Notes: a model not told the origin generated them from the sequence alone. A stretch of DNA of 63,925 nucleotides, filler included, from Perkinsus chesapeaki ATCC PRA-425 (GCA_013115145.1; 9 parts of 9 records of this genome joined end to end with filler, not necessarily neighbours in it); one strand, 5' to 3'. Shown: positions 25,860 through 53,930, counted from the whole stretch's first letter. Translations and numbers: made by a program.

Positions 25860-27316
25860 TTATCTTGTGAGAACGGTTGCGTTTATAAGAACCTGAATTC
25901 TGTACACTTCTATCTTGCCGAATATTTCGCAGCCGATTTTTGGCAACCTCCGGATACGAACGTTCAAACTAACGCTGAAGTCAACTGAACCCTGTAAGAC
26001 TCCCGCGTCTTGCTCCGGCAGACCGCGATAAGATATCCCGCCATGGATACAGACCGTAATATCGAGCTTAGCGAAGGGCAACCCTTGCTGGAAGATAACA
26101 GCGCATCTACCGGCTTTGAGGACAAATTTGAAGGATGAAGCACCACGGTCACTCAGGGTTTCAATACCAACTTCCAGATGAGACTGGCTGTCAGTGTCGA
26201 ATACGTCCACGAACACCATGGCGATAATTTTCTTGTTATTCCCCATGTCGACATAGAGGCAGTACGGTGTGTCTTCACCAACTGATAGTTCGGCCGCGCA
26301 ACCTGTGGGGAACTCAAACTCTATCACATTCATTAGGTGGCGTTGTCTTTTATTAGCAGTGAAATACTTTGCACTGGCTGTCCCCTCATCAAGGCCGAAG
26401 TAATCAATAGGGACTGGCGAGCCGGCCGAGCTGCGCAGACGTCTACGAGGCTTCCAATCCGGCTTTTCGCCGTTCTTGAAGAATTTACGTGTACTCTCGC
26501 CGACCAGATAAGTCCTAACCAAATGGGAATGCAGGGTTGGTGCGTCATCCCGGAAGCCGGCTGCGGTGCTTCGTCGCCGATATCATATTGAGAATATACA
26601 TAACTGAGGGCCTCCTCTATGGTCATACCTTCAGATAGATCTTCCCAATAGATAACCGATGTCTCTTGAAACACTTTACCGTCTTCAAGCGAGTTGACGC
26701 CCAGCAACTTCACCATTTTCTTATCACTTTCGTCGGTCATAAGGATCCACGTGTTTGGTAGAAGCCCTGTCTCGATGAGCGAGGAGGAGTTTATACCGGA
26801 CTGAGGATCAACCCCCTCCACTCCAGTTTTCATCCATTTATTCACTTTCTGCCCATCAACCTCTATGATACCATGATGAACCCAAGTGTCATCCTCGAGA
26901 GTATGATCAGCTTTGAGTCTTCGCATAGGTGGTCGCTTACTCTCTCGACGGGAGGCTTTGTAGACGGGGAACGATTTTTTATTGAAGAACTGCGCAGTTT
27001 CAGTAGTCTCCGGTGTCTCGGTCATGAGTAGATATTGATAGGGATAGTTGGGAGAAGCTTGCACTGTAACTTGGCCACCATTTACTATAAATACATCTTG
27101 ATAAATTGTGAAGGACTTGCCATCATCCATGCCCGGTAGGACCATGCCCATAGTCTCTCTCGACTTGGAGATGTGGCATCATACAGGCTTACCATGTTCA
27201 TCTAATAAGTCAGAATTGCAGTAATGGGTAACCTTAGCCTGCATACAAACATTGCTCATAGTAAAAGCAGATGCACCAAGAGGGAATAATAATATGGCTT
27301 TGAGGAAAGTGGCCAT
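25860..27316 (-). pseudogene. Disrupted paralogue of the secreted protein at 28452-30101
   Basis: ATG at 27316 (MATFLKAILLFPLGASAFTMS). Premature TGA at 27179-27181 where the intact copy has CGA. 1-nt deletion at about 26549 (GTCATCCCGG vs GTCATCTCCGG). Near-identical to the intact copy down to about 26250, then divergent. Confidence 0.85.
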
Positions 27317-27369
27317 GGTTGATGGAGGGAAACAACTGAAAGAAGTTCCTTTTCTCGTGCGTGTATCAC

Positions 27370-27990
27370 AAGAAACTCATTTGATGGGTAAAACGCTCTA
27401 ATTGCAAGCATATATTCCCGGAAAAGGTTGACCTTCCGATAAAGAGGCTCGAAGTGGATCTGCTTGTCGTACCACTTGTACGCACACATGTCATGCACAC
27501 TTGTTGTGACTCGCAATGTACCAACTTGCATCACCACTACTCCATGGGTAATCGGAACGGTGAGAAAAGATAACAAGCTGCATATTGATGATGCAGTCGT
27601 TTACAGGAGGCGTACCTGTCCAATGGACTAGCGGTTGTGAGGTCACTTTAAAATCCTCACACCTCACTGAGGTGTAACCACCAATGGTCACAGAGGGTGA
27701 CGCCAACGGAAACTACTCATTTGAAACTAGGCGACTGACACTTCAGTTTGATGTTCCGCCGGCGACAGGTGTCGATGATTCACTGTATTATCTAGTTTAA
27801 TCGCCACTCTTGACGTCGAGCTTTCTGCGGTACTAGTATCTGCTAAGTCTCTCTTCGGTATCGCTCTTGGTAAGCGCCCTATGGTGCAGGTTGTATTTGA
27901 ATGCGACATCTTGGTAATCATTCATATTTGGACTCATTTATGGACCCTCATGTCTGATGTAGCGAGGGATACCGTTGTCATTACCCCATG
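27370..27990 (-). pseudogene. Heavily decayed coding-like remnant between the two duplicated genes
   Basis: One frame reads as protein-like sequence (WGNDNGIPRYIRHEGP*MSPNMNDYQDVAFKYNLHHRALTKSDTEERLSRY*...SVTIGGYTSVRCEDFKVTSQPLVHWTGTPPVNDC) with multiple stops. Family not recognised. Confidence 0.25.
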
Positions 27991-28451
27991 TCGAACATGG
28001 ATATAGCGGAGCCAGCGCCCGAATTTCCGACTCGCTCATCTGCCAGCCGCGTCATAAATTATGAGTCTCATCATCACTCGAAGAACCCAACAAAGCAAGA
28101 TCTGAAGATCATGGCTACCTTACTTAAAACACTCTAATGACAGTTGGCAGTAAGTGCTGCAAACGGTAGCAGTAAACGATGATCAGAGGTGGAACTGGTT
28201 CACCAACCAATCCCATATTAGTTGACGTGTTATACGCATCAGCGCAATGTTAAAGATATCCATGCTAGTAACACATACGGAAGCATGATATTAGGGCACA
28301 AGTAGAAAGATAAAAACACCGGCAATTACCGGTAATGAATGCTTATCATTTGTAGAGAAGAATTATATGGCAGGACTGCTGCCGCGGGAGAAGCAGAACA
28401 TCATCTGGGTTCACCCCACGTGAAATGTTTTGCAAATAAACTTGCTGTCGA

Positions 28452-30101
28452 TTAGTCCGTCTCAGGGCGAGCGTCCCATATAGTCCAGGTCCAGGGCCAT
28501 TCGTGTTGGAAGGATAGAACATCAACCCACAAACGCAGATTAAAACGGGACTGAAAGTCCCACTTGTCATATCCCGCGCCAGGGCTATGGCCATAGACAT
28601 CAAACGATACCCTCACGCCACCCATGTCCGTACCAAGCTCTATACCAAGCTCGCCGTAAACAGTGTAATTCTTGCCCGGAACAGCATATATTCCAGCATT
28701 TGCTAAGATTGTGCTGTACACCTCTTTTGAAGTTGGAAGGACAAGCCTGAATGTGAGCTTGACCTCAGTCGATCCTTCAAAGATAGAAGGATCTGTATTA
28801 GAGCCTCTATTATAAGCGAACTCACCATCGACACATACCGTAATGTCGAGTTTGGCGAAGGCTAGCCCTTGCTGGAAGATAACCGCGCAACCGCCAGCTC
28901 TGAAGATGAAGTTGAGGGATAATTCATTCCCCTTTCGCACAGTTTCAGTCCCAACCTCAAGGCGAGCACGGCTGTCAGTGTCGAATACATCTACGAACAC
29001 CATGGCGATAGTTTTCTTGTTATCCTCGATGTCGACATAGAGGCAGTACGGTGTGTCTTCACCAACTTCTAGCCCGGCCGCACAACCTGTGGGGAACTCA
29101 AACTCTATCACATTCATTAGGTGGCGTTGTCTTTTATTAGCAGTGAAATACTTTGCACTGGCTGTCCCCTCATCAAGGCCGAAGTAATCAATAGGGACTG
29201 GCGAGCCGGCCGAGCTGCGCAGACGTCTACGAGGCTTCCAATCCGGCTTTTTGCCGTCCTTGAAGAATTTACGTGTACTCTCGCCGACCAGATGAGTCCT
29301 AACCAAATGGGAATGCAGGGTTGGCGCGTCATCTCCGGAAGCCGGCTGCGGTGCTTCGTCGCCGATATCATACTGAGAATATACATAACTGAGGGCCTCC
29401 TCTATGGTCATACCCTCAGATAGATCTTCCCAATAGATAACCGATGTCTCTTGAAACACTTTACCGTCTTCAAACGAGTTGACGCCCAGTAACTTCACCA
29501 TCTTCTTATCACTTTCGTCGGTCATAAGGATCCACGTGTTTGGTAGAAGCCCTGTCTCGATGAGCGAGGAGGAGTTTATACCGGACTGAGGATCAACCCC
29601 CTCCACTCCAGCTTTCACCCATTTATTCACTTTCTGCCCATCAACCTCTATGATACCATGATGAACCCAAGTGTCATCCTCGAGAGTATGATCAGCTTTG
29701 AGTCTTCGCATAGGTGGTCGCTTACTCTCTCGACGGGAGGCTTTGTAGACGGGGAACGATTTTTTATTGAAGAACTGCGCAGTTTCAGTAGTCTCCGGTG
29801 TCTCAGCCATGAGTAGATATTGATAAGGATAGTTGGGAGAAGCTTGCACTGTAACTTGGCCACCATTTACTATAAATACATCTTGATAAATTGTGAAGGA
29901 CTTGCCATCATCCATGCCCGGTAGGACCATGCCCATAGTCTCTCTCGACTTGGAGATGTGGCATCGTACAGGCTTACCATGCTCATCTAATAAGTCAGAA
30001 TTGCAGTAATGGGTAACCTTAGTCTGCATACGAATATTGCTCATAGTGAAGGCAGATGCACCAAGAGAGGATAATAATATGGCTTGGAGGAAAGTAGCCA
30101 T
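28452..30101 (-). CDS. Intronless secreted protein of unknown function (549 aa from the first ATG)
   Basis: Long uninterrupted ORF. ATG at 30101 starts a signal-peptide-like MATFLQAILLSSLGASA. Beta-rich composition and Trp-rich C-terminus (HEWPWTWTIW). Confidence 0.85.
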   Translation of the reverse strand: MATFLQAILLSSLGASAFTMSNIRMQTKVTHYCNSDLLDEHGKPVRCHISKSRETMGMVLPGMDDGKSFTIYQDVFIVNGGQVTVQASPNYPYQYLLMAETPETTETAQFFNKKSFPVYKASRRESKRPPMRRLKADHTLEDDTWVHHGIIEVDGQKVNKWVKAGVEGVDPQSGINSSSLIETGLLPNTWILMTDESDKKMVKLLGVNSFEDGKVFQETSVIYWEDLSEGMTIEEALSYVYSQYDIGDEAPQPASGDDAPTLHSHLVRTHLVGESTRKFFKDGKKPDWKPRRRLRSSAGSPVPIDYFGLDEGTASAKYFTANKRQRHLMNVIEFEFPTGCAAGLEVGEDTPYCLYVDIEDNKKTIAMVFVDVFDTDSRARLEVGTETVRKGNELSLNFIFRAGGCAVIFQQGLAFAKLDITVCVDGEFAYNRGSNTDPSIFEGSTEVKLTFRLVLPTSKEVYSTILANAGIYAVPGKNYTVYGELGIELGTDMGGVRVSFDVYGHSPGAGYDKWDFQSRFNLRLWVDVLSFQHEWPWTWTIWDARPETD

Positions 30102-30968
30102 TGCTAGAAGATGAATGCAGCTACAAGAGGGTGCGTTTGACAAAAAGCCTAGGTATTGAAGTCTCCCGGTAGTTGCACATCGAGTGGATAGTCTAAGCCA
30201 TTTGGCGTTGGACTATAAACTCTCGTACACACACACGAAAAACCTTCCCGAGTGTGAAACTGCCACACATACGTATATGGAGACAGTTTGCCTGTCACGG
30301 CACTAGAAAAGAGACAATAACCGGCTGGTTGCAAATTAAGCATGCTGGTGGCCACCACTTCCGCGTTGTACTCCTCCTTGACAAGGAATCCTTGTTCGTT
30401 TGAGACTTGGCGTTTGGCAGCATAGTGATGTCACTACTAGGAGTAATAACGAGAGAATAGTCTAGCAGTTTGGAGATCTCGACCCTAGCATGAGCGCCCT
30501 CGTAACGATCGCGGTGACTCGTCGGTCACAACTGTTGCGCTGAGTATGCTTGTTAGTACAACATCGATGCTGCAAACAATTGTAATGGTGGTGAAAATGT
30601 AGCACTCTTGCAACGTGTGATTTACCCGTTGGGTAAAACTCATTACATGTTTTGCACACCATGTGTGTTATGAAGAGCCATAGCGTGTTGTGGGAAGTAT
30701 CTTGCACTGGCTTTTTACATAACTACAAAGTCTAATAATATTAAATTAGCGACTTACAGGCAGCAAGCCTACTAGCATAATCTGACAGAATTCCTTTGGT
30801 AATCAGATTTGTTGGCTTCTCTATGAACACGGTGCGGGATCTTTCGATTTCCTAAGTGGGCGTAGAATGGAGATTCGTGACGCGAGCGTGCGCGGTTCTC
30901 ATCAATACGATACGTCTTACGGGACAGAGCTCTTGGGATACTAGCAACGCGAGGCTTTGTTAGGCTAG

Positions 30969-44223: not shown

Positions 44224-44884
44224 GCTCATCAGCGGTACTTTTCGATGGAGCTCTGTGGCGTAGTTATGAGATCGGAGACTCTTGGGACAGTCGCACGTTA
44301 GACTCTGAGATGGCATGGGAAGTGGAGGCATGGCAGAAAAGGAGTACACAGCATCATCGGTCTTATACTCGGGGACGAGCGGCAAGGAGGAGCTATTAAA
44401 GAAGGAGGAGGACGAGCCGTACTGGCGTGAATCCACAGATCTACTTTCAATCGTTCTTGCACCATATCAATCGCCATCATGAACTGCAGCAGCTAGTATT
44501 AGGTTTGAAGGAGTAAAGAAATTCAGCATAAGCATGCAATTATGTATACTTTCATCATCATCACACTGCAGCAGAGTTTGCACAGTTGTACATCTCCCCT
44601 CTTGCTGCTGCTGGTCAGTAGTGGTTTATTAGATAGTCCACGTGCTGCATTGTAGAAAGGAGTTTCATCCTCACTACTTCCTTTGCCTTGAGTTTGTATC
44701 CCAGTGATTGACCCACCCACTCGAGTAACGCAAAACAGTGATAAAGTAAGGATACAGTAAGCGAGACTCACGAGAAAATATGTGGAGGAATCGCAAGTTC
44801 AAAGGAACACATAGCTTATTATCAACCACCACAGCAGCACTGCACATCGGGCAGCGTGGAAAACGAAAACGCGAGAATAATTAT

Positions 44885-45466
44885 TTAGTTAGTGCACTGA
44901 TCAGGGGACAGGTCAAGGTTGAGGGCACCGGCCACGGAAACATGGAAGATGTTGGTGTTAGCATTGTAGCTGCACTTCATGAACTGAGACAGCTGCTGGG
45001 TGTTCATACCAAGAGACTCGGCCAACTTGATGAGATCAGCGTTGTTCCAATCGGGGGCAACAGTAGTGCAATCAGACTCCATGGTATAGCCGATATCCTT
45101 GGCGTTGATCATACCAGCGACGTTAAGGTCGAAGGAGTTGTCGTGGAGCTCGACAGTGGCGGGCATGCCCATAGCGGAACCACAGTACTCACCCTCGGGC
45201 TTCTTGCAAGAGGAGCCAGCGCTACCAGTAGTGGTAGAGGCACCAGCGGCACCAGTGGTCTGAGGAGCAGCGGTAGTCTGTTGCTGAGACTGAGAGGAAG
45301 AAGTGGTAGTGGCAACCTCAGAAGGGCCAGTGGGCTCCATGAACTTGGTGGTAGCCTGGGGAGCAATAGTAGTCACGGGAGCAGCGGTGGTGGTGCTATC
45401 ATCATCACTGCAACCGGTGAGGGAGACGGCGATGAAGGCACTGACGACAGCAGCGATGAACTTCAT
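44885..45466 (-). CDS. Lipobox-like secreted/surface family, copy 1 (193 aa)
   Basis: MKFIAAVVSAFIAVSLTG-C19-SDDDS, Thr-rich linker, then domain CKKPEGEYCG...C...PDW...Y...F...LDLSPDQC. Intronless. Confidence 0.9.
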   Translation of the reverse strand: MKFIAAVVSAFIAVSLTGCSDDDSTTTAAPVTTIAPQATTKFMEPTGPSEVATTTSSSQSQQQTTAAPQTTGAAGASTTTGSAGSSCKKPEGEYCGSAMGMPATVELHDNSFDLNVAGMINAKDIGYTMESDCTTVAPDWNNADLIKLAESLGMNTQQLSQFMKCSYNANTNIFHVSVAGALNLDLSPDQCTN

Positions 45467-46095
45467 TACGTAGGTAAGTAAGGGAAGAAGAAACAGGAAA
45501 AGTCCTTTTGAGAAGAGTTGCTTAGCTAGCGTTTGGGAGGCTTTGTGTAATATGTCCCTAAACTCGTGTGCGAAAGGCTTATGGCTAGCAAACACTAGAC
45601 GCTCGCGATACTATACAAAAGATATAAGTTCCGACATAACTATCCTCGACTTATTGTAAGATGCCATCAGGGCATTGTCACTCCAAGCCCGTTGAGGCTC
45701 AAAAATTAGCTGCGGAATTATGCACGCGTGCGCAAACCTTGGCAATTGGTTCTGTTTTATGACCCCACCGGTTACGCCCCTCGATAGAGAAGTCAACGGG
45801 GTCCTGTATTCAAATACCGATCGAACGTTATAGACAAATGATTGTTAGTTTTCCATTACGTCAGTACGAATTTGATCAAGTGTGAACTGGAATAAACGCG
45901 CCAAGCCGAAACCCTCCCCGAAAACTTAGAACACAACATGAGTCTCGCTTCACTGAGCAGAACAAGGAACTAACTGTCAGAGAGAATATACACTGCTGTG
46001 ACTGCAGAGCGTGGTGAACACGCTAACTAGATGGTATAAGAACAGGAATATGCGAATGCAAAAGAAGTTTAGTTCAACACCGGAACACGGACTTC

Positions 46096-46590
46096 TTAAT
46101 CAGAACACTGACCGGTGGTCATGTCCAAGGAGTGACCGCAGATCTTGCTAACGTCAAGGGTAAAGACATTAGAAGTGGCATTGTAATCGCAGAACATCAT
46201 CTGCGACAACATACTAGGCTCCATTTGGGCAGACTTGGCCATAGCCTCGTAAGAGGGGCTAGTAGAGTCCAAGATCAATTGGGAGCAGTCGGAGGACATA
46301 GTGAAAGGAACGTTATCACAGGTCATTGTGTTGGCGAGGTTCATCGAGAAGTTGTCGCCATCGATGGTTACAGAGCCGGGCTGGCCCATGAAGCTACCGC
46401 AGTACTTGCCACTAGGCTTCGCACAAGTAACGGAACCGGTGGGGGCGCTAGTGGTAGACTGGAGGAAGCCGGTAGTGGGGGCTGCTGTGGTGGCAGGGGC
46501 CTTCGTGGTAGTAGTAGTACTGTCACTATCACTGCATCCGGTGAGGGATACGGCGACGAGAGCACTGGCAACGGCGGCGATGAACTTCAT
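46096..46590 (-). CDS. Lipobox-like family, copy 2
   Basis: MKFIAAVASALVAVSLTG-C19-SDSDS, Thr-rich linker, CAKPSGKYCG domain ending LDMTTGQC. Carries additional Cys residues. Confidence 0.9.
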   Translation of the reverse strand: MKFIAAVASALVAVSLTGCSDSDSTTTTTKAPATTAAPTTGFLQSTTSAPTGSVTCAKPSGKYCGSFMGQPGSVTIDGDNFSMNLANTMTCDNVPFTMSSDCSQLILDSTSPSYEAMAKSAQMEPSMLSQMMFCDYNATSNVFTLDVSKICGHSLDMTTGQCSD

Positions 46591-47259
46591 GTTAAAGGTC
46601 GGTGTAGAGAAAGAAGTCTGTTTGATTTCGGGAAGCGCGAAGCTAAGGAATTTTTGGAGACAAAGCTTTGTGCAAAATCCGGCGCAATCGCTAAGCGGCA
46701 AAATCTACCTTCCTTGAAGGAAAATGAGGAGCTCACAACTCAATGGAGCAGTGAGTGGACGACGTGCATATATCACAGATCAGTCCCGGGAATATTAATA
46801 CAGGTGGCGGTGAGAAAAAAATAATGTGATCCATGCGCCGACTCGGAACTTCCGAGTCGGAAGCAATGTCTTTTCGATGGTGAAACCCCCTATCGTTAGA
46901 GGAACGGAGTCCCGTAGCCCTTCAAACCTTGAAGTAGTCTCTGTGCGAAAACGATGTTGATTCCGATTGGATACACGAGGTTACGAGGTATTGTGACGTT
47001 CCGTATACGATGTAGGTTTGTTGAAGTCGAGATAGTTTGGAGTCTGCACGCATGCGCAGTCGCACAACCCTTAGAAACGCGTAGACGAAATGTTACCACT
47101 ATATTGAACAAAACCCTCTATTCTTTGGAAATAAGTCAACCGCGATGAAAGCGACCACAAAACAAGGCCTTCGCTCAAAGGCACAGCTGGACACCACCAC
47201 ATTGCAACATGCGGCAGACCGCGCTATACGGTTCAGCTGGATAGTAAACACGCAACTGA

Positions 47260-47997
47260 TTAACACTGTTGCTTAGATAAGTCAAGAGAGCCTAGACCAC
47301 TGACGTTAACACTGAAAGTATCATCAGACGGCTCATAGCTTATGCTCAAAGTAGAAGCCAATTCTTGAGGGGGGATACCGAGGGTTTGGGCAAGGGCCAC
47401 CATAGCAGGGTTAGAATAGTCGGGCTTGAAATCAGTGCAGTCCTCTAGAGTGTATCCTACGTTCTTAACGTTAACCAATGGGGCAACACTGAGACCGAAT
47501 GTGTCCTGTCCAATGGTTGCGACCCCACTGAACATAAGGTATTTGCCGCAGTATTCTCCACGGGGAATGACCAAGCAGGATGTAGTGGAAGCGGTCGTTG
47601 GTCCGCTTGTAGTAGAAGTTACCGGAACGCTTGTGAACACGGACGAAGTCGTTCCAGTGCTGCTTGGTACAGTGGTGTTACTAGACGGAAATGTACCGTC
47701 TGTAGTTGAGGTAGCAGTAGCTGTACTAGCACTGCCCGTTGTCGAGACCGTTGTGCCTGTCACGGTCGTCGAAGTAAAAGTAGCCGGCATAGTCGTTGTT
47801 GCATTCACCGAGATAGTAGTATTGATCGGTTAAGTAGAAAAGCCGCTAGTCGAAGTTCTTGGGGTCCAAGCAGTTGTAGCCATAGGTACCGCCGTAGTAG
47901 GAGCCGCCGATGGCTGCGCTGTGGTAGTAGAGTTGTCACTGCAGCCGCTCAAATAGACGGCGAGCAATCCTGCAGCAGCGGTTGCAAAGAATTTCAT
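47260..47997 (-). pseudogene. Lipobox-like family, copy 3, with a single in-frame TAA at 47830-47832
   Basis: ATG at 47997 (MKFFATAAAGLLAVYLSG-C19-SDNS) is in the same frame as ORF 47260-47808, which ends in the family domain CLVIPRGEYCG...LDLSKQQC. One stop lies inside the Thr/Ser linker. Confidence 0.8.
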
Positions 47998-48078
47998 TGA
48001 TGCACAAAAACTGAAAACGTCAGATTTGAGACAATACCGTAATTAATCGCACTTTATCAATGTAACTCATACGAGGCT

Positions 48079-48139
48079 AGGGGCTAGCCCCTTGACCCTA
48101 GGCTAGCCCCTTGGCCCTAGGCTAGCCCCTTGGCCCCTA
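48079..48139. repeat. Three 19-bp tandem repeats led by the 14-bp palindrome AGGGGCTAGCCCCT
   Basis: GGCTAGCCCCTTG(A/G)CCCTA starts at 48082, 48101 and 48120. Confidence 0.9.
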
Positions 48140-48244
48140 GCTGTCTTCCTCCGGGACTTGCTCGGGTGTCTCATCTACACAAAGTTTGGTGACTAAGGGT
48201 CTAAAATAACGGAGAGCTTATGGAGTGAATCAGCCGTATTTATA

Positions 48245-48480
48245 TAAACTAAACACTTATAATCTATCAGACACAGACCAGAGCAAAATGCTCAAATACC
48301 CAACCCCACTCCAGGGAACTGATATAAATCTTTCCACAACAAGTACCGCTCATCAATAGACAGAACCTGGGGATGTCCAGAAGGAAAGAGAGTTCAGTTA
48401 GCAGTATTTCAGTTATTAGCATGAGGTAAAACTGGCAGGTAGTTCAGTGTGAAGGAAAATATGAAGTAGTCTAGTAACCG
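48245..48480. repeat. About 235-bp 3' flank duplicated almost identically at about 51305-51540
   Basis: TAAACTAAACACTTATAATCTATCA...GAAAATATGAAGTAGTCTAGTAACCG is present downstream of both copy 4 and copy 6, with only isolated mismatches visible. Confidence 0.9.
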
Positions 48481-49052
48481 TGATGGTCTCGACCATTTTC
48501 AGGCTCACAAGCATCATGAGTCATGGTTACCGAGACCTTTGGCTTCCAATCAAGATGGAAGCTATCACTGGGAAGATTATATGTGATGGTAAGTACTTGT
48601 TGGAGCTGATCCGTAGTAAGGCCAAATTCTTGGGCCACACGAGCAACCTCTTCACTGGAGTAGTCGGGCTCGAACTCTTTGCAATCCTCAAGATGGAATG
48701 GTATGCTCTTGAGGTCAACCTTCGGCTCATAGTCGAAATAGAATACGTGTTCTTCAATAAGTATCCGAGCCATCTCGCCATTGATTTTACCGCAATACTC
48801 TCCAGCAGGCTTGCCAGAGCAGTATTCGTCGTCTCCTCCTGAATAAGCTGTTGTTGCATCAGGTTCATAGTGGTTATCGGGGTCGAACGCTGTAGTAGGG
48901 GCCATGAAATGATCTCCGTCACTTGATGTTGTTTCATGCATGCTTGCTGCAGTAGTTGGAGCAGCAGTGTTCCTGCTACCATCACTCGAACACCCGCTCA
49001 TAAGCACCATTACCAAGGCGAGGCACACTCCCGCAAAAGAAAACGTAGACAT
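48471..49052 (-). CDS. Lipobox-like family, copy 4 (193 aa)
   Basis: MSTFSFAGVCLALVMVLMSG-C21-SSDGS; domain CSGKPAGEYCG...DCKEFEPDYSSE...YNLPSDSF...HDAC. Confidence 0.9.
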   Translation of the reverse strand: MSTFSFAGVCLALVMVLMSGCSSDGSRNTAAPTTAASMHETTSSDGDHFMAPTTAFDPDNHYEPDATTAYSGGDDEYCSGKPAGEYCGKINGEMARILIEEHVFYFDYEPKVDLKSIPFHLEDCKEFEPDYSSEEVARVAQEFGLTTDQLQQVLTITYNLPSDSFHLDWKPKVSVTMTHDACEPENGRDHHGY

Positions 49053-49533
49053 TGGTAGACTAAATGAAAATCAGTAACAACTAGCGGTCACGAAAAATCT
49101 GTAACTTACTAATATTGAAAACTTTCACAAGTCACATTATTCGGTATAATGGATTGCGCTATAGCTCGGAAAGCATCATTTTGTGACTTCATGTCTACAA
49201 ACTGGTGTCACAAATCATCACTGTGACATCGTTGTCCCGCCAGTATGGTACTGTGTGTCCCTTCGCTAAACGGATAAATACTTTATATATCATGTGCATC
49301 GAAATGACGGTTTTTCAACTAGTGCATAAAACATCGTAGTAAAGTTAAAAGACACGAGCAGCTAGCACAAATCTTGGCACCATTGATCAAAGCAATAGGC
49401 AAGTGGTTGTCGATGGATACAGTATAATACAAGGAGCTTGCAAGGAGAAAACGATTGTGGCACACAAGAGAAAGGGCCCTTGGCGAATCAGACCAACTAC
49501 TCAAAGGCGTGATGGACTAGTGCTGCTTCTAGA

Positions 49534-49800
49534 TCAGCCTCGGGCTTTTGTGAGATTGATGGAAGAACAGGGGGATGATAGATGCAATCTCTTTAAGCAG
49601 GGAATAATATACTGAGTTCTCTGTTCATGTTAACTAGCCATCCTTTGCAGCCTACTAGCTACCTGGCCTCTTCAGGATTGGTGCAGTCCTCGACTACTAA
49701 TCAAACATAACTAATCTGGCCTCAGAATGCTGGCCAGCATACTGCCCTCGTACGTCTGCGCCTCATCACGTCGGAGATAGACTACTGTATTACGGTGGTT
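49534..49800 (-). pseudogene. Decayed relic of a lipobox-family copy, closest to copy 7
   Basis: Broken frames give TYEGSMLAS, VEDCTN, MNRELSIYSLLKE and SINLTKARG*, aligning with copy 7 NYEGLMGS, VDQCTD, MNKDVKISYSPLND and PISLTRDQC*. The 3' flank at 49330-49480 also resembles the copy 7 flank at 53220-53370. Confidence 0.45.
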
Positions 49801-50129
49801 TTTTACTACTCGCTAATGTGGGTAATGAGTGTCATCTACAGGCTCTACTCAAGTGTAAAAGCCAAGAGATACTCTTACTGAAGGCTGGATGAATTACACT
49901 AATTTGTCAATTTGGTTATCGTGAGCCCGTGACATTGTGTGAAGAACTCAGCTGACACAGTGGGATATACTGTCATACTAGCTTAATAGCCACAGTCATA
50001 ATAATTGGGTATGGTAGAACGTGAAGGACGAGCTTCGAGGTTGCATGTCTCAATTTCGGATGTAATATAGAGATGGTATTCTATAAAGTTGAAAGCAGCT
50101 TCTATTTTTACGTTTTTCGTGTTACTATA

Positions 50130-50705
50130 ATGAAGTTCTTCCCCGTCGTTGCCTCCGCTGTTGTTGCCCTCTCTTTAACTGGTTGCAGTGATGATGACTC
50201 TACCACGACTGTTTCTCCCAGTACCACAACAAGCGCTGCGGCCCAAGCCACTACTGCCGCTATGGAGACTACAACGTCTTTCCTCCGTCCCACTACAGCT
50301 CCTGGTGACTCCACTACTGCTGCTTCTGGTGAGGCGACTATCAGTTCCTCTGGTTCTGAGACTACCGCTCCTAGCGATGGTGGAAGCTGTTCGGCTACCC
50401 CTTCTGGCAAGTATTGCGGTAAATACATGATGTTTAAGGGTACTGCTACTATCGATGATGGAACCTTCGGCTTAAGTGTTAAACCCGTTGTGAATATCAA
50501 TGGTGTCGATTACACTATGGATACTTGTACCGACTTCGAGCCCGACTACAGTGATCCTCAAATGGTGGAAATGGCCCAAACTATCGGTATGACTCCTGAG
50601 GAGCTCGATCAGGCTATGACTGTTACTTACGATGAGTCCAATGATACCTTTAATATCTCTGTGCAGGGATTGATGTCTCTTGACCTTTCTAAGGATCAGT
50701 GCTAA
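50130..50705 (+). CDS. Lipobox-like family, copy 5 (inverted relative to the others)
   Basis: MKFFPVVASAVVALSLTG-C19-SDDDS, Thr/Ser linker, CSATPSGKYCG...CTDFEPDYS...LDLSKDQC. Confidence 0.9.
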   Translation: MKFFPVVASAVVALSLTGCSDDDSTTTVSPSTTTSAAAQATTAAMETTTSFLRPTTAPGDSTTAASGEATISSSGSETTAPSDGGSCSATPSGKYCGKYMMFKGTATIDDGTFGLSVKPVVNINGVDYTMDTCTDFEPDYSDPQMVEMAQTIGMTPEELDQAMTVTYDESNDTFNISVQGLMSLDLSKDQC

Positions 50706-51531
50706 AGTGCATTGTGAAGATGGTTGTCACCATTGGTACATCGAGCAGATACGTATTTGATAGTATCATCTTGCTCTCCATTGTTTTGACTAGTTTAAAC
50801 CATATCCCTTTTTGTGATGGTTTAATCTATTTATCGTATTGTGTTTTTAACTGGTCTACGGGCGGCGCTGGAGGCAGCACCGGCCCGGTGCCACTGGGAC
50901 ATGGTAGGTCTAAAGAAAGGGGACACTCGACACAAAGCTTACGGTAGTCTATACAGAATGAACTAGCGAAATATATTATTGGCACTTAAGTCTGTGTAAA
51001 GGCACCGCAGTCAACTGTGATTGCCAATACAAGGTATATAAGGCTTGTTCCTTTAGCCTTGCGCAAAATTTTGAATAGGTATGACGAGGGTGAGTACCAC
51101 CAGTGATGACCGGCCCGCTCATAGAATGAGCCGACCGCCCATTTATATAAAGTTCCGCCGTATGTTATTGAGAGAGGATTCCAAGGGAAGCTCCCTGAGT
51201 GAAACCTCAGTAGAATATAATCCCGTAGCTGAAAAAGCGTATTTACGGCGTTGGCCGGAATGACAAATATAACAACCAGGGGACACTGTTCGAACACTGT
51301 TTACATAAACTAAACACTTATAATCTATCACACACAGACCAGAGCAAAATGCTCAAATACCCAACCCCACTCCAGGGAACTGATATAAATCTTTCCACAA
51401 CAAGTACCGCTCATCAATAGACAGAACCTGGGGATGTCCAGAAGGAAAGAGAGTTCAGTTAGCAGTATTTCAGTTATTAGCATGAGGTAAAACTAGCAGG
51501 TAGTTCAGTGTGAAGGAAAATATGAAGTAGT

Positions 51532-52470
51532 CTAGTAACCGCGACAGCCATCATGAGCCATTGTCACCGAGACATTTGGCTTCCAATCAAGATGGAAGCT
51601 ATCACTGGGAAGATTATATGTGATGGTAAGTACTTGTTGGAGCTGATCCGTAGTAAGGCCAAATTCTTGGGCCACACGAGCAACCTCTTCACTGGAGTAG
51701 TCGGGCTCGAACTCTTTGCAATCTTTAAGATGGAATGGTATGTTCTTCAGATTAACCTTCGGTTCATAATGGAAATAGAATACGTGCCCTTCGATAAGTA
51801 TCCAAGCCATCTCGCCATTAATTTCACTGCAATACTCTCCAGCAGGCTTGCCATAGCAGGACTCTCCATCGCCTCCTTTATAAGGTGTTGTTGTATCAGG
51901 TTCATAGCGGTTATGAGTCTCGAACGTTGTAGGGGCCACGGGATGGTCAGACTCGCAGAAATCATGAGTCATGGTTACCGAGACCTTCGAGTTCCAGTCA
52001 AGATTGAAGCTATCACTGGGAAGATCATATGTGATGGTAAGTACTTGTTGGAGCTGATCCGTAGTAAGGCCAAATTCTTGAGCCACACGAGCAACCTCCT
52101 CACTGGAGTAGTCGGGCTCGAACTCTTTGCAATCCTCAAGATGGAATGGTATGTTCTTGAGGTCAACCTTCGGCTCATAGTCGAAATAGAATACGTGTTC
52201 TTCAATAAGTATCCGAGCCATCTCGCCATTGATTTCACCGCAATACTCTCCAGCAGGCTTGCCAGAACAATATCCGCTTCCAGTATAAGGTGTTGTTGCA
52301 TCAGCTCCATGGCGGTTATCTGGGTCGAACGCTGTAGTAGGGGCCATGAAATGATCTCCCCCATTTGCAGTAGTTGGATCAGCAGTGTTGCTGCTACCAT
52401 TACTGGAACACCCGCTCATAAACACCATTACCAAGGCGAGGCACACTCCTGCAAAAGAAAACGTAGACAT
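51532..52470 (-). CDS. Lipobox-like family, copy 6, with two tandem copies of the domain
   Basis: MSTFSFAGVCLALVMVFMSG-C21-SSNGS followed by two near-identical GKPAGEYC...DCKEFEPDYSSEEVARVAQEFGLTTDQLQQVLTITY domains. Confidence 0.9.
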   Translation of the reverse strand: MSTFSFAGVCLALVMVFMSGCSSNGSSNTADPTTANGGDHFMAPTTAFDPDNRHGADATTPYTGSGYCSGKPAGEYCGEINGEMARILIEEHVFYFDYEPKVDLKNIPFHLEDCKEFEPDYSSEEVARVAQEFGLTTDQLQQVLTITYDLPSDSFNLDWNSKVSVTMTHDFCESDHPVAPTTFETHNRYEPDTTTPYKGGDGESCYGKPAGEYCSEINGEMAWILIEGHVFYFHYEPKVNLKNIPFHLKDCKEFEPDYSSEEVARVAQEFGLTTDQLQQVLTITYNLPSDSFHLDWKPNVSVTMAHDGCRGY

Positions 52471-53426
52471 TGGTAGACTAAATGAAATGTAAAAACAACT
52501 GAGCAAACACGATCAGCCCAGCACCCACGAATGGTGGAAACACTTAAAAGTCACAGTATTCGGTATAATAGATTGCGCTATAGCTTGGGAAGCACCCTGT
52601 TGTGAGTTCCTGTCTACAAACTGATGTCACAAGTTGTAACTGTGACGAAATCACAGGATATACGGATAGCCGAATGTCCTCCATGGTTTGAAGACTTCCA
52701 TTCGAACTCGCGGAAACAACTTTGTAAAACGTTCGAGGGCGCATGAGAAAGCTACGCCACTGTAAAATGCAATTTCGGAAACTGGTAGAGGAAGGATTCC
52801 CCAGAAACTGCTGGATCGAAATTTCATCCCGCGAAAGATTACAAAGCAAAAAACTTACAACTAGAAAGTTTTTCTTTGCTTTCCACACTTGTGCTTTTCT
52901 CAGAATATTTCAACAATACGAGACTCTCGCAGGGAGAGATGTGCCTTAGAAAGGCACAAAATGTCAACTACACGGAAGAGTGGTAGAATATTTGGAGGTA
53001 CATGTCTGCTGGCGAGTGGTGTGAGAGAATTTCACAGAAATTCGGTCGATGTTCAAACCTCCCGAGACCAAGGGGGGCTTTCACTGCGGCCGCTCGACAA
53101 GGTAGTTGTAGGACTCGACTGAGCGATCTAAACGCGCAATCCAAGCACTTGACGCCAACTAAACTCTATAGACTACGCGTGCATCGAAAGGAAACTCTTC
53201 AACTAGTACATTGACGAGTGTAGTGGAGCTTAATAGTTGAAAGACAAGAGAGGCCAGCGCTAATCATAGCCCCGTTGGGTCGATGATAAGCGTTGTACAC
53301 TCAGGAATATAGTATGATACATGAGCGGGAACGTAGGAGATGATTGTGATACACAACAGAAGGAACTTTTGCCGAAGTATGCCGCTCACTATTGATCACT
53401 TATCAAAGTGCTCTTAGTGCTCTCAG

Positions 53427-53930
53427 TCAACACTGGTCCCTAGTGAGGCTGATGGGAGCATTAGGAGGATGGGACACAGAGAAACTATCATTCAATGGAG
53501 AATAAGAAATCTTGACATCCTTGTTCATTTCGGCAGTCGTCGTACTCATCCTACTAGCTACCGCGGCCACCTGGGGATTACTGTAGTCCGGCACGAGATC
53601 AGTGCACTGGTCGACGTAGTAGGCGACATTACTAACAAGATCACCAGAAGGTATAGCGACGGAGAACGCCTTTGACCTGATGGTGACGCTTCCCATTAGA
53701 CCTTCATAGTTGAAGCAATAGACTCCAACAGGACTGTTAGGACATATAATCGCTGTCGGGTTTCCACCGAAGTCGGTTACCGATTCCTCAGAGGATACGG
53801 CGACGGGCCTGCCAGTGGGTGCAAGGAACGCCTGCTCTTGTAGAGCCGCCTGCTCAACTGCTGCGTGGTCCGTACAGCCGGAGAAGAATACTGCAGCGAT
53901 TGCACAGCAGAACAATGCCACTGAACGCAT
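53427..53930 (-). CDS. Lipobox-like family, copy 7 (most divergent, 167 aa)
   Basis: MRSVALFCCAIAAVFFSG-C19-TDH; CPNSPVGVYC...DQCTDLVPDYSNP...YSPLNDSF...LTRDQC. Confidence 0.85.
   Translation of the reverse strand: MRSVALFCCAIAAVFFSGCTDHAAVEQAALQEQAFLAPTGRPVAVSSEESVTDFGGNPTAIICPNSPVGVYCFNYEGLMGSVTIRSKAFSVAIPSGDLVSNVAYYVDQCTDLVPDYSNPQVAAVASRMSTTTAEMNKDVKISYSPLNDSFSVSHPPNAPISLTRDQC

Follow-up and report, generated by a model that had tools for sequence, protein, structure and literature searches.

A 28,265-bp contig of Perkinsus chesapeaki ATCC PRA-425 (GCA_013115145.1) carries a tandem array of seven paralogous genes whose hydrophobic leaders all close on a Gly-Cys pair resembling the bacterial lipobox. 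The contig occupies positions 25834-54098 of the stretch analysed here (the window; 63,925 nucleotides, filler included) and the array positions 44885-53930. Comparison of about 24 leaders from three Perkinsus species indicates that the Gly-Cys pair is under purifying selection, and it is very likely that the Cys has been selected for a function. ORF (open reading frame) listing, translation and a six-frame motif scan identify seven leader-bearing paralogues, c1 to c7, with eight copies of a 105-amino-acid (aa) domain, c6 holding two. Taken together the data describe a lineage-specific, almost certainly secreted family with an unusual conserved signal-peptide junction; lipidation of the Cys is a proposal that finds its chief support in the strict retention of Gly-Cys. 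The motif is real, unusual and possibly important, and the mechanism set out below is offered as a proposal read from the sequences.

A Gly-Cys junction retained in nearly every leader

The leaders end LTGC (c1, c2 and c5), LSGC (c3), MSGC (c4 and c6) or FSGC (c7), with the Cys at residue 19, or at 21 in c4 and c6, followed by SD, SS or TD. All seven genes thus reproduce the endings and Cys positions of the original prediction, which was made from the window sequence. When the whole 28-kb piece is scanned in six frames for a hydrophobic leader followed by a lipobox-like motif, only the seven gene starts match. The n-region reads MK or MR in c1, c2, c3, c5 and c7 and is followed by an uncharged h-region, while that of c4 and c6 (MSTFSF...) and of their P. 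olseni orthologues has no K or R.

Aligning 17 leaders on the Cys leaves Gly(-1) and Cys(0) as the only invariant positions; Leu(-3) is present in 82%, and the other columns range over 35-88%. The [ST]-G-C that was first described as invariant holds throughout the window, but elsewhere it loosens: orthologues and other paralogues also place A, N or I at -2, and one leader reads VTSC. Lipoboxes follow the consensus [LVI][ASTVI][GAS]C and are cut between Gly and Cys, and the peptidase LspA has no mammalian equivalent (PMC6952399). About 20 of about 24 leaders fit this consensus strictly (LTGC, LSGC, LAGC, LIGC and VTSC), those outside it being MSGC (c4, c6), FSGC (c7) and LNGC (P. olseni c2).

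Over a tree length of about 8 substitutions per site, the Cys never changes in these ~24 leaders and the Gly changes once, to Ser. In conservation the leader Cys equals the Cys residues that form the disulfides of the domain. All four Gly codons (GGT, GGA, GGC, GGG) and both Cys codons (TGC, TGT) are in use. Because the pair has been kept through this repeated synonymous change, and across paralogue clades that predate speciation, the comparison indicates purifying selection on Gly-Cys, in agreement with what had been argued from the divergence of the surrounding leader. All copies descend from one ancestor, and the evidence therefore bears on retention of the motif, not on its repeated origin.

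A word search with the leader alone (residues 1-40) found no other Perkinsus family carrying it, at low sensitivity. Against Pfam the leaders gave nothing above threshold, LPAM_1 reaching E 1.5 on that of c1. Below threshold in NCBIfam, the matches of c2, c4 and c5 fall mostly within the opening 30-70 positions of families of bacterial lipoproteins (LpqN, YgdI/YgdR, TrbK, WKL, LppK, NigD and SP_0198; E 0.006-0.8, far below cut-offs), which shows that leader and tether resemble a bacterial lipoprotein N-terminus in sequence, and no more than that.

A Perkinsus-specific family that duplicated before speciation

An exhaustive profile search with the domain, covering 1.84 billion representatives, returned 28 rows. 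Twelve are true members of the family: P0004, P0009-P0017 and P0019 (E 1e-16 to 3e-51) and P0021 (7e-10). All eight domains of the window match the 105-aa profile over its full length. Every member row with a source name is from Perkinsus, and the others are equal to ORFs of the window, P. olseni or P. marinus, or read as family. Bacterial and metagenomic rows (P0018 and, P0021 excepted, P0020-P0035) were rejected as relatives, being sums of 4-10-bit matches to unrelated repeats in long proteins. Starting from c5, a homology search retrieved P. chesapeaki FOL47_007822 (92% identical) and otherwise relatives from P. olseni and P. marinus only. By sequence, then, members are known from three species alone, P. 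chesapeaki, P. olseni and P. marinus. The genes are eukaryotic, as supposed, and the suggestion that they might be a horizontally acquired lipoprotein family finds no bacterial sequence relative among the 1.84 billion representatives.

The array is syntenic in the other two species. P. olseni has c1, c2, c6, a fragment resembling c4/c6, c7 and c5, with kinase and ATP-grasp genes alongside; P. marinus has c2, c7 and c5, the last in two copies, and its array is interrupted by a Pao-type retrotransposon. The c5 orthologues are 64-70% identical. Orthologue leaders end LTGC, LNGC, LAGC or LSGC; the P. olseni c6 orthologue, also two-domain, has a leader ending FLAGC, and the c7 orthologues of both species end SLSGC. 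A maximum-likelihood tree of 24 domains, with summed branch lengths of ~8.2 substitutions per site, resolves clades for c7, c4/c6, c1, c2 and c5/c3, and as each holds two or three species, the duplications predate speciation.

Several further loci extend this picture. The P. marinus insertion encodes a Pao/BEL-type retrotransposon polyprotein of 1,923 aa, between the c7 and c5 orthologues (L002:3545-9316 (-)). A second P. chesapeaki contig, JAAPAO010000819, bears an extra paralogue with leader FLIGC (L004:2263-2841 (+)) between two near-identical c5-like copies, so that either the family is larger than the window shows or a second haplotype is present; the NCBI model P0003 on this contig fuses two genes. 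P. marinus GG673688 encodes a distant member (L005:5725-6762 (+)) with the leader VTSC and its barrel C-terminal to repeats: three Cys-rich units (W-D-x-Y-C...S-Y-C-K-x-W-D...P-V-C-Q-G-S) replace the Thr-rich stalk.

Transcripts of c1 and c2 carry a spliced leader

Transcript cover was sought by aligning contigs from small RNA libraries (very small runs) to 44800-50750. Contigs with 0 differences run collinear with c1 over 45185-45507 and, in another run, over 44879-45161; for c2, 0-difference contigs span 46391-46619, and one contig with 2 differences covers 46131-46420. None of the c1 or c2 contigs contains a joint. Being collinear and without joints, they establish c1 and c2 as intronless at the transcript level, and it is for these two copies that the intronless character ascribed to the whole array is borne out.

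Beyond 45507 in c1, and beyond 46619 in c2 (two runs), the contigs continue into a DinoSL-type spliced leader (SL), read in reverse complement. It lies one base, within the T-run, from the published Perkinsus SL sequences (PMC3101222); the odd base may come from the primer, the libraries being reverse-transcription PCR products. The AG trans-splice acceptors lie on the minus strand at 45505-45506 for c1, where a pyrimidine tract precedes the acceptor, and at 46618-46619 for c2, as placed from the genomic sequence and the loose ends of the contigs. The resulting 5' untranslated regions, 38 nt in c1 (45467-45504, minus strand) and 27 nt in c2 (46591-46617, minus strand), contain no upstream ATG. 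With the SL joined this close to the start, the MKF leaders of c1 and c2 are true N-termini. Both genes are expressed and SL-trans-spliced.

Contigs ~93% identical to c5, from a relative or allele, fit from 50122 onwards, nine nt upstream of the ATG, and an SL-like loose end comes ahead of that point. An in-frame ATG further upstream, at 50073, is probably not the start used. Neither c3 nor c4 is covered, which in runs as small as these is uninformative on expression. In run X4 the c1-like contigs over 44879-45161 have a word depth of 55-197 in ~4 million letters, and part of them are ~94% identical and belong to a relative or other allele. c1 may be abundantly expressed, contig depth being a poor measure of this.

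The domain is modelled as a lipocalin-like β-barrel

The domain bears the pattern C-x3/4-P-x-G-x-Y-C...C...PD[YW]...Y...F...C as described, including the deviation of c2, which reads LDS at the PD[YW] position; its invariants are C, P-x-G-x-Y-C, F, C, D, A, Y and C. The description of it as a four-Cys domain needs amending, since most copies have four Cys but c1 has five and c2 seven. The proteins terminate 0-11 residues from the last Cys, without a hydrophobic tail; there is neither a glycosylphosphatidylinositol (GPI) signal nor a transmembrane segment at the C-terminus of the family proteins.

AlphaFold2, run on an alignment of 13 domain sequences, gave a model with a mean predicted local distance difference test (pLDDT) of 89 and a predicted template-modelling (TM) score of 0.76. 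The domain is confidently modelled as an eight-stranded lipocalin-like β-barrel, with two helices inserted between strands 5 and 6. Foldseek returned clear matches only to uncharacterised entries, which from their accession series we take to be Perkinsus-like, plus weaker, presumably Symbiodinium-like ones. A shape search of the ESM Atlas retrieved a Perkinsozoa cluster, then bacterial Lipocalin_4, META and MliC clusters (TM 0.53-0.62). The best matches in the PDB (Z 6-7.8) include many bacterial surface lipoproteins (LbpB, TbpB, fHbp, NHBA, Tp17, SP_0198 and Omp19), along with fatty-acid-binding proteins and designed barrels; this Z range is classed as a common arrangement by the notes of the search tool, and we therefore read the likeness as one of fold class, a small calycin-like barrel, not as homology. 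Among Swiss-Prot models, Omp10, Omp19 and LprI were matched at E ~0.1.

Pfam offered no family for any of the 13 domains, even with E up to 10 allowed, and none above threshold for the full proteins. A protein-atlas feature search, in which bacterial clusters scored at most 0.79 (one a lipid-attachment-site family), was too weak to use. The profile and structure searches proposed earlier to tell bacterial from protist relatives thus yield sequence relatives in Perkinsus only and generic bacterial fold matches (Z <8), in a fold class that bacterial surface lipoproteins do use widely. As to ligand, our guess from the fold class would be that the barrel binds a small hydrophobic molecule or inhibits a host enzyme, as Omp19 and MliC do.

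A disordered, Ser/Thr-rich stalk

The stalk between leader and barrel is 36-67 residues long and net acidic (2-11 acidic residues against one basic), and Ser and Thr together make up as much as 53% of it. It is least Thr-rich in c7, where the 43-aa linker is poorer in both Ser and Thr. The stalk is probably O-glycosylated. In a full-length model of c5, residues 1-85 have pLDDT <50 and residues 87-191 ~90, supporting the predicted architecture of leader, disordered tether and folded domain.

One motif, F-[LM]-x-[PS]-T with an invariant Phe, recurs in the otherwise variable linker of every paralogue (at ~48900 in c4 and ~53810 in c7). Its versions (KFMEPT, GFLQST, HFMAPT, SFLRPT, AFLAPT) are found in acidic surroundings, 14-31 residues C-terminal to the Cys, and it could be a processing or recognition site.

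Comparison with known systems

Signal-peptide cleavage exposes an N-terminal Cys in Hedgehog and Spitz, which is then palmitoylated in the secretory lumen by HHAT/Rasp, an MBOAT enzyme. To our knowledge this is the only established eukaryotic case of acylation at an exposed N-terminal Cys, and it is known only in animals. The sequence context there, C-G-P-G-R, is unlike that of the Perkinsus leaders. The mucin-like surface and secreted protein arrays of alveolate parasites (Cryptosporidium mucins and the GPI-anchored surface antigens of apicomplexans, for example) are likewise tandem, fast-diversifying and intronless, and join Thr/Ser-rich stalks of differing length to a small Cys-stabilised domain. 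The Perkinsus proteins differ in having no C-terminal GPI signal or transmembrane segment, and their domain is unrelated.

The likeness to bacterial lipoproteins exported by Sec and processed by signal peptidase II (SPII), such as those of Braun's type (L-A-G-C-S-S), extends from a short K/R n-region in most copies and an uncharged h-region, through L-[ASTI]-G-C with the Cys at 19-21 and Ser at +2, to a low-complexity tether and a small β-barrel. The Perkinsus copies depart from them as nuclear alveolate genes with SL-trans-spliced mRNAs and no sequence homology to bacterial families, and in the uncharged n-region of c4 and c6. At the level of the barrel, Lipocalin_4 (PF13648), META (PF03724), MliC (PF09864) and Omp19/Omp10 are, like the Perkinsus model, eight-stranded, antiparallel, ~100 residues long and tethered behind a lipobox, and fHbp, TbpB, LbpB, NHBA, Treponema Tp17 and SP_0198 offer a similar likeness, at scores typical of a common arrangement (TM 0.5-0.6, Z 6-7.8). 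None of these has a hidden Markov model (HMM) match to the Perkinsus domain, whose four-Cys pattern and two-helix insert between strands 5 and 6 are its own. Archaea provide a further parallel: their lipobox proteins are lipidated by AliA/AliB, non-homologous to Lgt, so that the lipobox is conserved and functional in a lineage without Lgt or LspA homologues (PMC12462473). Archaeal lipobox proteins differ from those of Perkinsus in being prokaryotic, with Sec or Tat export across the cytoplasmic membrane.

What the conserved Cys may do

Our best overall explanation, in which we have about even confidence, is a Perkinsus-specific tandem family in which the selected Cys is the attachment point on secreted stalked barrels. 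The N-terminal signal peptide would be cleaved in the endoplasmic reticulum, where signal peptidase would cut between Gly and Cys and leave the Cys as mature residue 1. Gly at -1 and Leu at -3 are compatible with a cut just before the Cys, and this position is favoured because a mere cleavage-site constraint would tolerate Ala, Gly or Ser, yet the Cys never changes; we lean slightly towards the Cys being the mature N-terminus. There it would serve as a covalent attachment point. The attached group may be a lipid, either added by a luminal acyltransferase as in Hedgehog and Spitz or linked through a thioether as in bacteria or archaea; alternatively, a disulfide may join the Cys to a partner or the cell wall. 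The flexible stalk would then hold the barrel at the parasite surface. Given that the proteins have no GPI signal or transmembrane segment, N-terminal attachment is the sole possible anchor; otherwise they would be soluble.

That the Cys is lipidated, by whichever of these routes, is possible but doubtful. The specific form first proposed, in which Perkinsus lipidates a lipobox Cys in the secretory pathway and so anchors diversified stalked barrels at its surface, is an unlikely reading of the leaders; acquired Lgt/LspA-like enzymes or an unrelated eukaryotic acyltransferase would then be responsible. Cleavage position, Cys chemistry, cellular location and barrel ligand are all points that we infer, and the supposed role of the family as surface antigens or effectors is speculation.

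Several considerations weigh against a Cys kept as an attachment point. The sequence T/S-G-C|S also fits the -3/-1 rule of signal peptidase I, so that the Cys could go with the signal peptide. Common ancestry of all copies makes the origin of the motif a single event. The parity of the domain Cys residues gives no consistent hint, and an argument built on it was dropped on account of the odd counts in c1 and c2. Neither Lgt nor LspA is known in eukaryotes, reviews giving no mammalian or eukaryotic counterpart, and a literature search found neither linked to Perkinsus.

An ordinary signal peptide, cut after the Cys ([ST]-G-C|S) so that the Cys is discarded and the motif is an inherited cleavage-site preference, would agree with the signal peptidase I rule, the residues then at -3 (S, T, A) and -1 (C) being small or neutral. 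It would leave most mature proteins with four Cys, enough for two disulfides; the leaders of c4 and c6, with no charged n-region, look eukaryotic, and UniRef calls the P. marinus c2 orthologue 'Secreted protein'. Such a site tolerates A, G, S, C and T at -1, however, and constancy of the Cys in ~24 leaders over ~8 substitutions per site is not what it leads one to expect; the N and I found at -2 would become -3 residues, poor or unusual there, and the mature c1 and c2 would keep odd Cys counts of five and seven. We judge this alternative rather unlikely. True bacterial-type lipoproteins, arising from a horizontally acquired gene together with an Lgt/LspA-like or AliA/AliB-like system that would place a diacylglyceryl-type lipid on the Cys and cut ahead of it, are improbable, and it is at this level that a bacterial-type route enters our estimate for lipidation as a whole. 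Strict consensus fit in most leaders, their MK or MR n-regions and Cys at 19-21, the weak profile matches falling on N-termini of bacterial lipoprotein families, the barrel kind and the archaeal precedent for non-Lgt enzymes all speak for them. They are opposed by the failure of the exhaustive HMM search to return a bacterial relative, by the absence of Pfam or NCBIfam matches above threshold, by fold scores no higher than Z 7.8, within the common-arrangement range, and by base composition, the array matching the surrounding contig in a GC content that is even across the 28-kb piece (0.44-0.54). The leaders themselves count against a bacterial type where c4 and c6 have no positive n-region and where M or F stands at -3 and N at -2, and we know of no report of Lgt or LspA in a eukaryote.

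The linker motif raises another possibility, a bipartite signal to a relic plastid, with F-[LM]-x-P-T acting as a transit-peptide motif of the dinoflagellate FVAP type, to which the invariant Phe in every paralogue gives some resemblance. However, 14-31 residues separate the motif from the Cys, an acidic SDDD-type stretch comes before it, the linkers are net negative, and a disulfide-rich barrel with a mucin-like stalk suggests a protein destined for the cell exterior or the secretory lumen; we consider plastid targeting very improbable. That the genes are not from Perkinsus at all, and reflect bacterial contamination or mis-assembly, has the bacterial look of the leaders and nothing else in its favour, and its probability is close to nil. 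It is refuted by the spliced leader on the mRNAs and by the synteny of the array in three Perkinsus genomes that were assembled independently (the contigs measuring 28 kb, 457 kb and 484 kb), with ATP-grasp genes, a gene for a protein kinase and a Pao-type retrotransposon as neighbours.

Gene inventory and surrounding features

The tandem arrangement of seven genes was correctly foreseen; the relic said to accompany them was not found as a separate eighth copy by tblastn and blastn, and is either c3, with its one in-frame stop, or the second domain of c6. All genes but c5 lie on the minus strand. From ORF listing and Cys positions, c1 (44885-45466; 193 aa) has its leader at 45410-45466, ending SLTGC with Cys19, a stalk of 67 aa and the five-Cys barrel at 44888-45208. 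c2 (46096-46590; 164 aa) has a leader at 46534-46590, also ending SLTGC, a 36-aa stalk, and at 46099-46425 the barrel with seven Cys and the deviant PD[YW] position. In c3 (47260-47997), the leader at 47941-47997 ends YLSGC and the barrel lies at 47263-47577; an in-frame TAA at 47830-47832, codon 56, breaks the gene within the stalk. This lone stop between an intact leader and an intact domain could mark a pseudogene, an allele or a sequencing error. c4 (48471-49052; 193 aa) combines a leader at 48990-49052, ending LMSGC with Cys21 and an n-region devoid of K or R, with a barrel at 48507-48821. c5 (50130-50705, plus strand; 191 aa) has a leader at 50130-50186 ending SLTGC, a 67-aa stalk and a barrel at 50388-50702. 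The largest, c6 (51532-52470; 312 aa), starts with a leader at 52408-52470 that ends FMSGC, Cys21, and continues into two barrels at 51955-52269 and 51544-51858. c7 (53427-53930; 167 aa) completes the array, its leader at 53874-53930 ending FFSGC and its barrel at 53430-53744.

Apart from the P. marinus c2 orthologue named above, the family carries 'hypothetical' annotations, and literature searches found no paper on these Perkinsus proteins, their locus tags, or a Perkinsus lipobox, Lgt or LspA. Some public gene models appear mistaken, at the 5' end or internally: that of c5 (P0001) takes out 16 conserved residues as an intron, the NCBI c4 model (P0010) begins at an internal Met (MVLMSGC...) downstream of the leader start, and that of c3 (P0011, compared with 47260-47808) begins downstream of the in-frame stop. 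Long ORFs run antisense to the family genes (44780-45481, 46132-46824 and 51553-52476 on the plus strand, and others); they are most likely a by-product of the codon make-up of the Thr/Ser/Ala-rich stalks, not genes. The spacer between c3 and c4 contains a 19-bp unit repeated 2.9 times with 97% matches (48082-48136).

Towards the left of the 28-kb piece lie protein-kinase exons, an ATP-grasp gene and two DUF6740 paralogues, the latter at 25860-30143 on the minus strand. One DUF6740 gene is intact, encodes 563 aa and opens with an ordinary signal peptide that closes on LGASA. Its partner, which probably bears a frameshift, is divided between two frames that overlap (26333-27151 and 25860-26522).

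Significance for Perkinsus biology

In this eukaryotic family purifying selection has kept a lipobox-type Gly-Cys across many duplications and no fewer than three speciations. The role of the Cys lends itself to direct experiment, P. marinus being culturable and transfectable. Should the Cys prove not to be lipidated, the family would still stand as an expressed group of secreted stalk-and-barrel proteins peculiar to this lineage, which might scavenge ligands or interact with the mollusc host. Were it lipidated, the family would represent a new eukaryotic membrane-anchoring route and the first lipobox-dependent lipoprotein system in a eukaryote, and could provide a target peculiar to the parasite, in pathogens responsible for devastating losses of oysters and clams.

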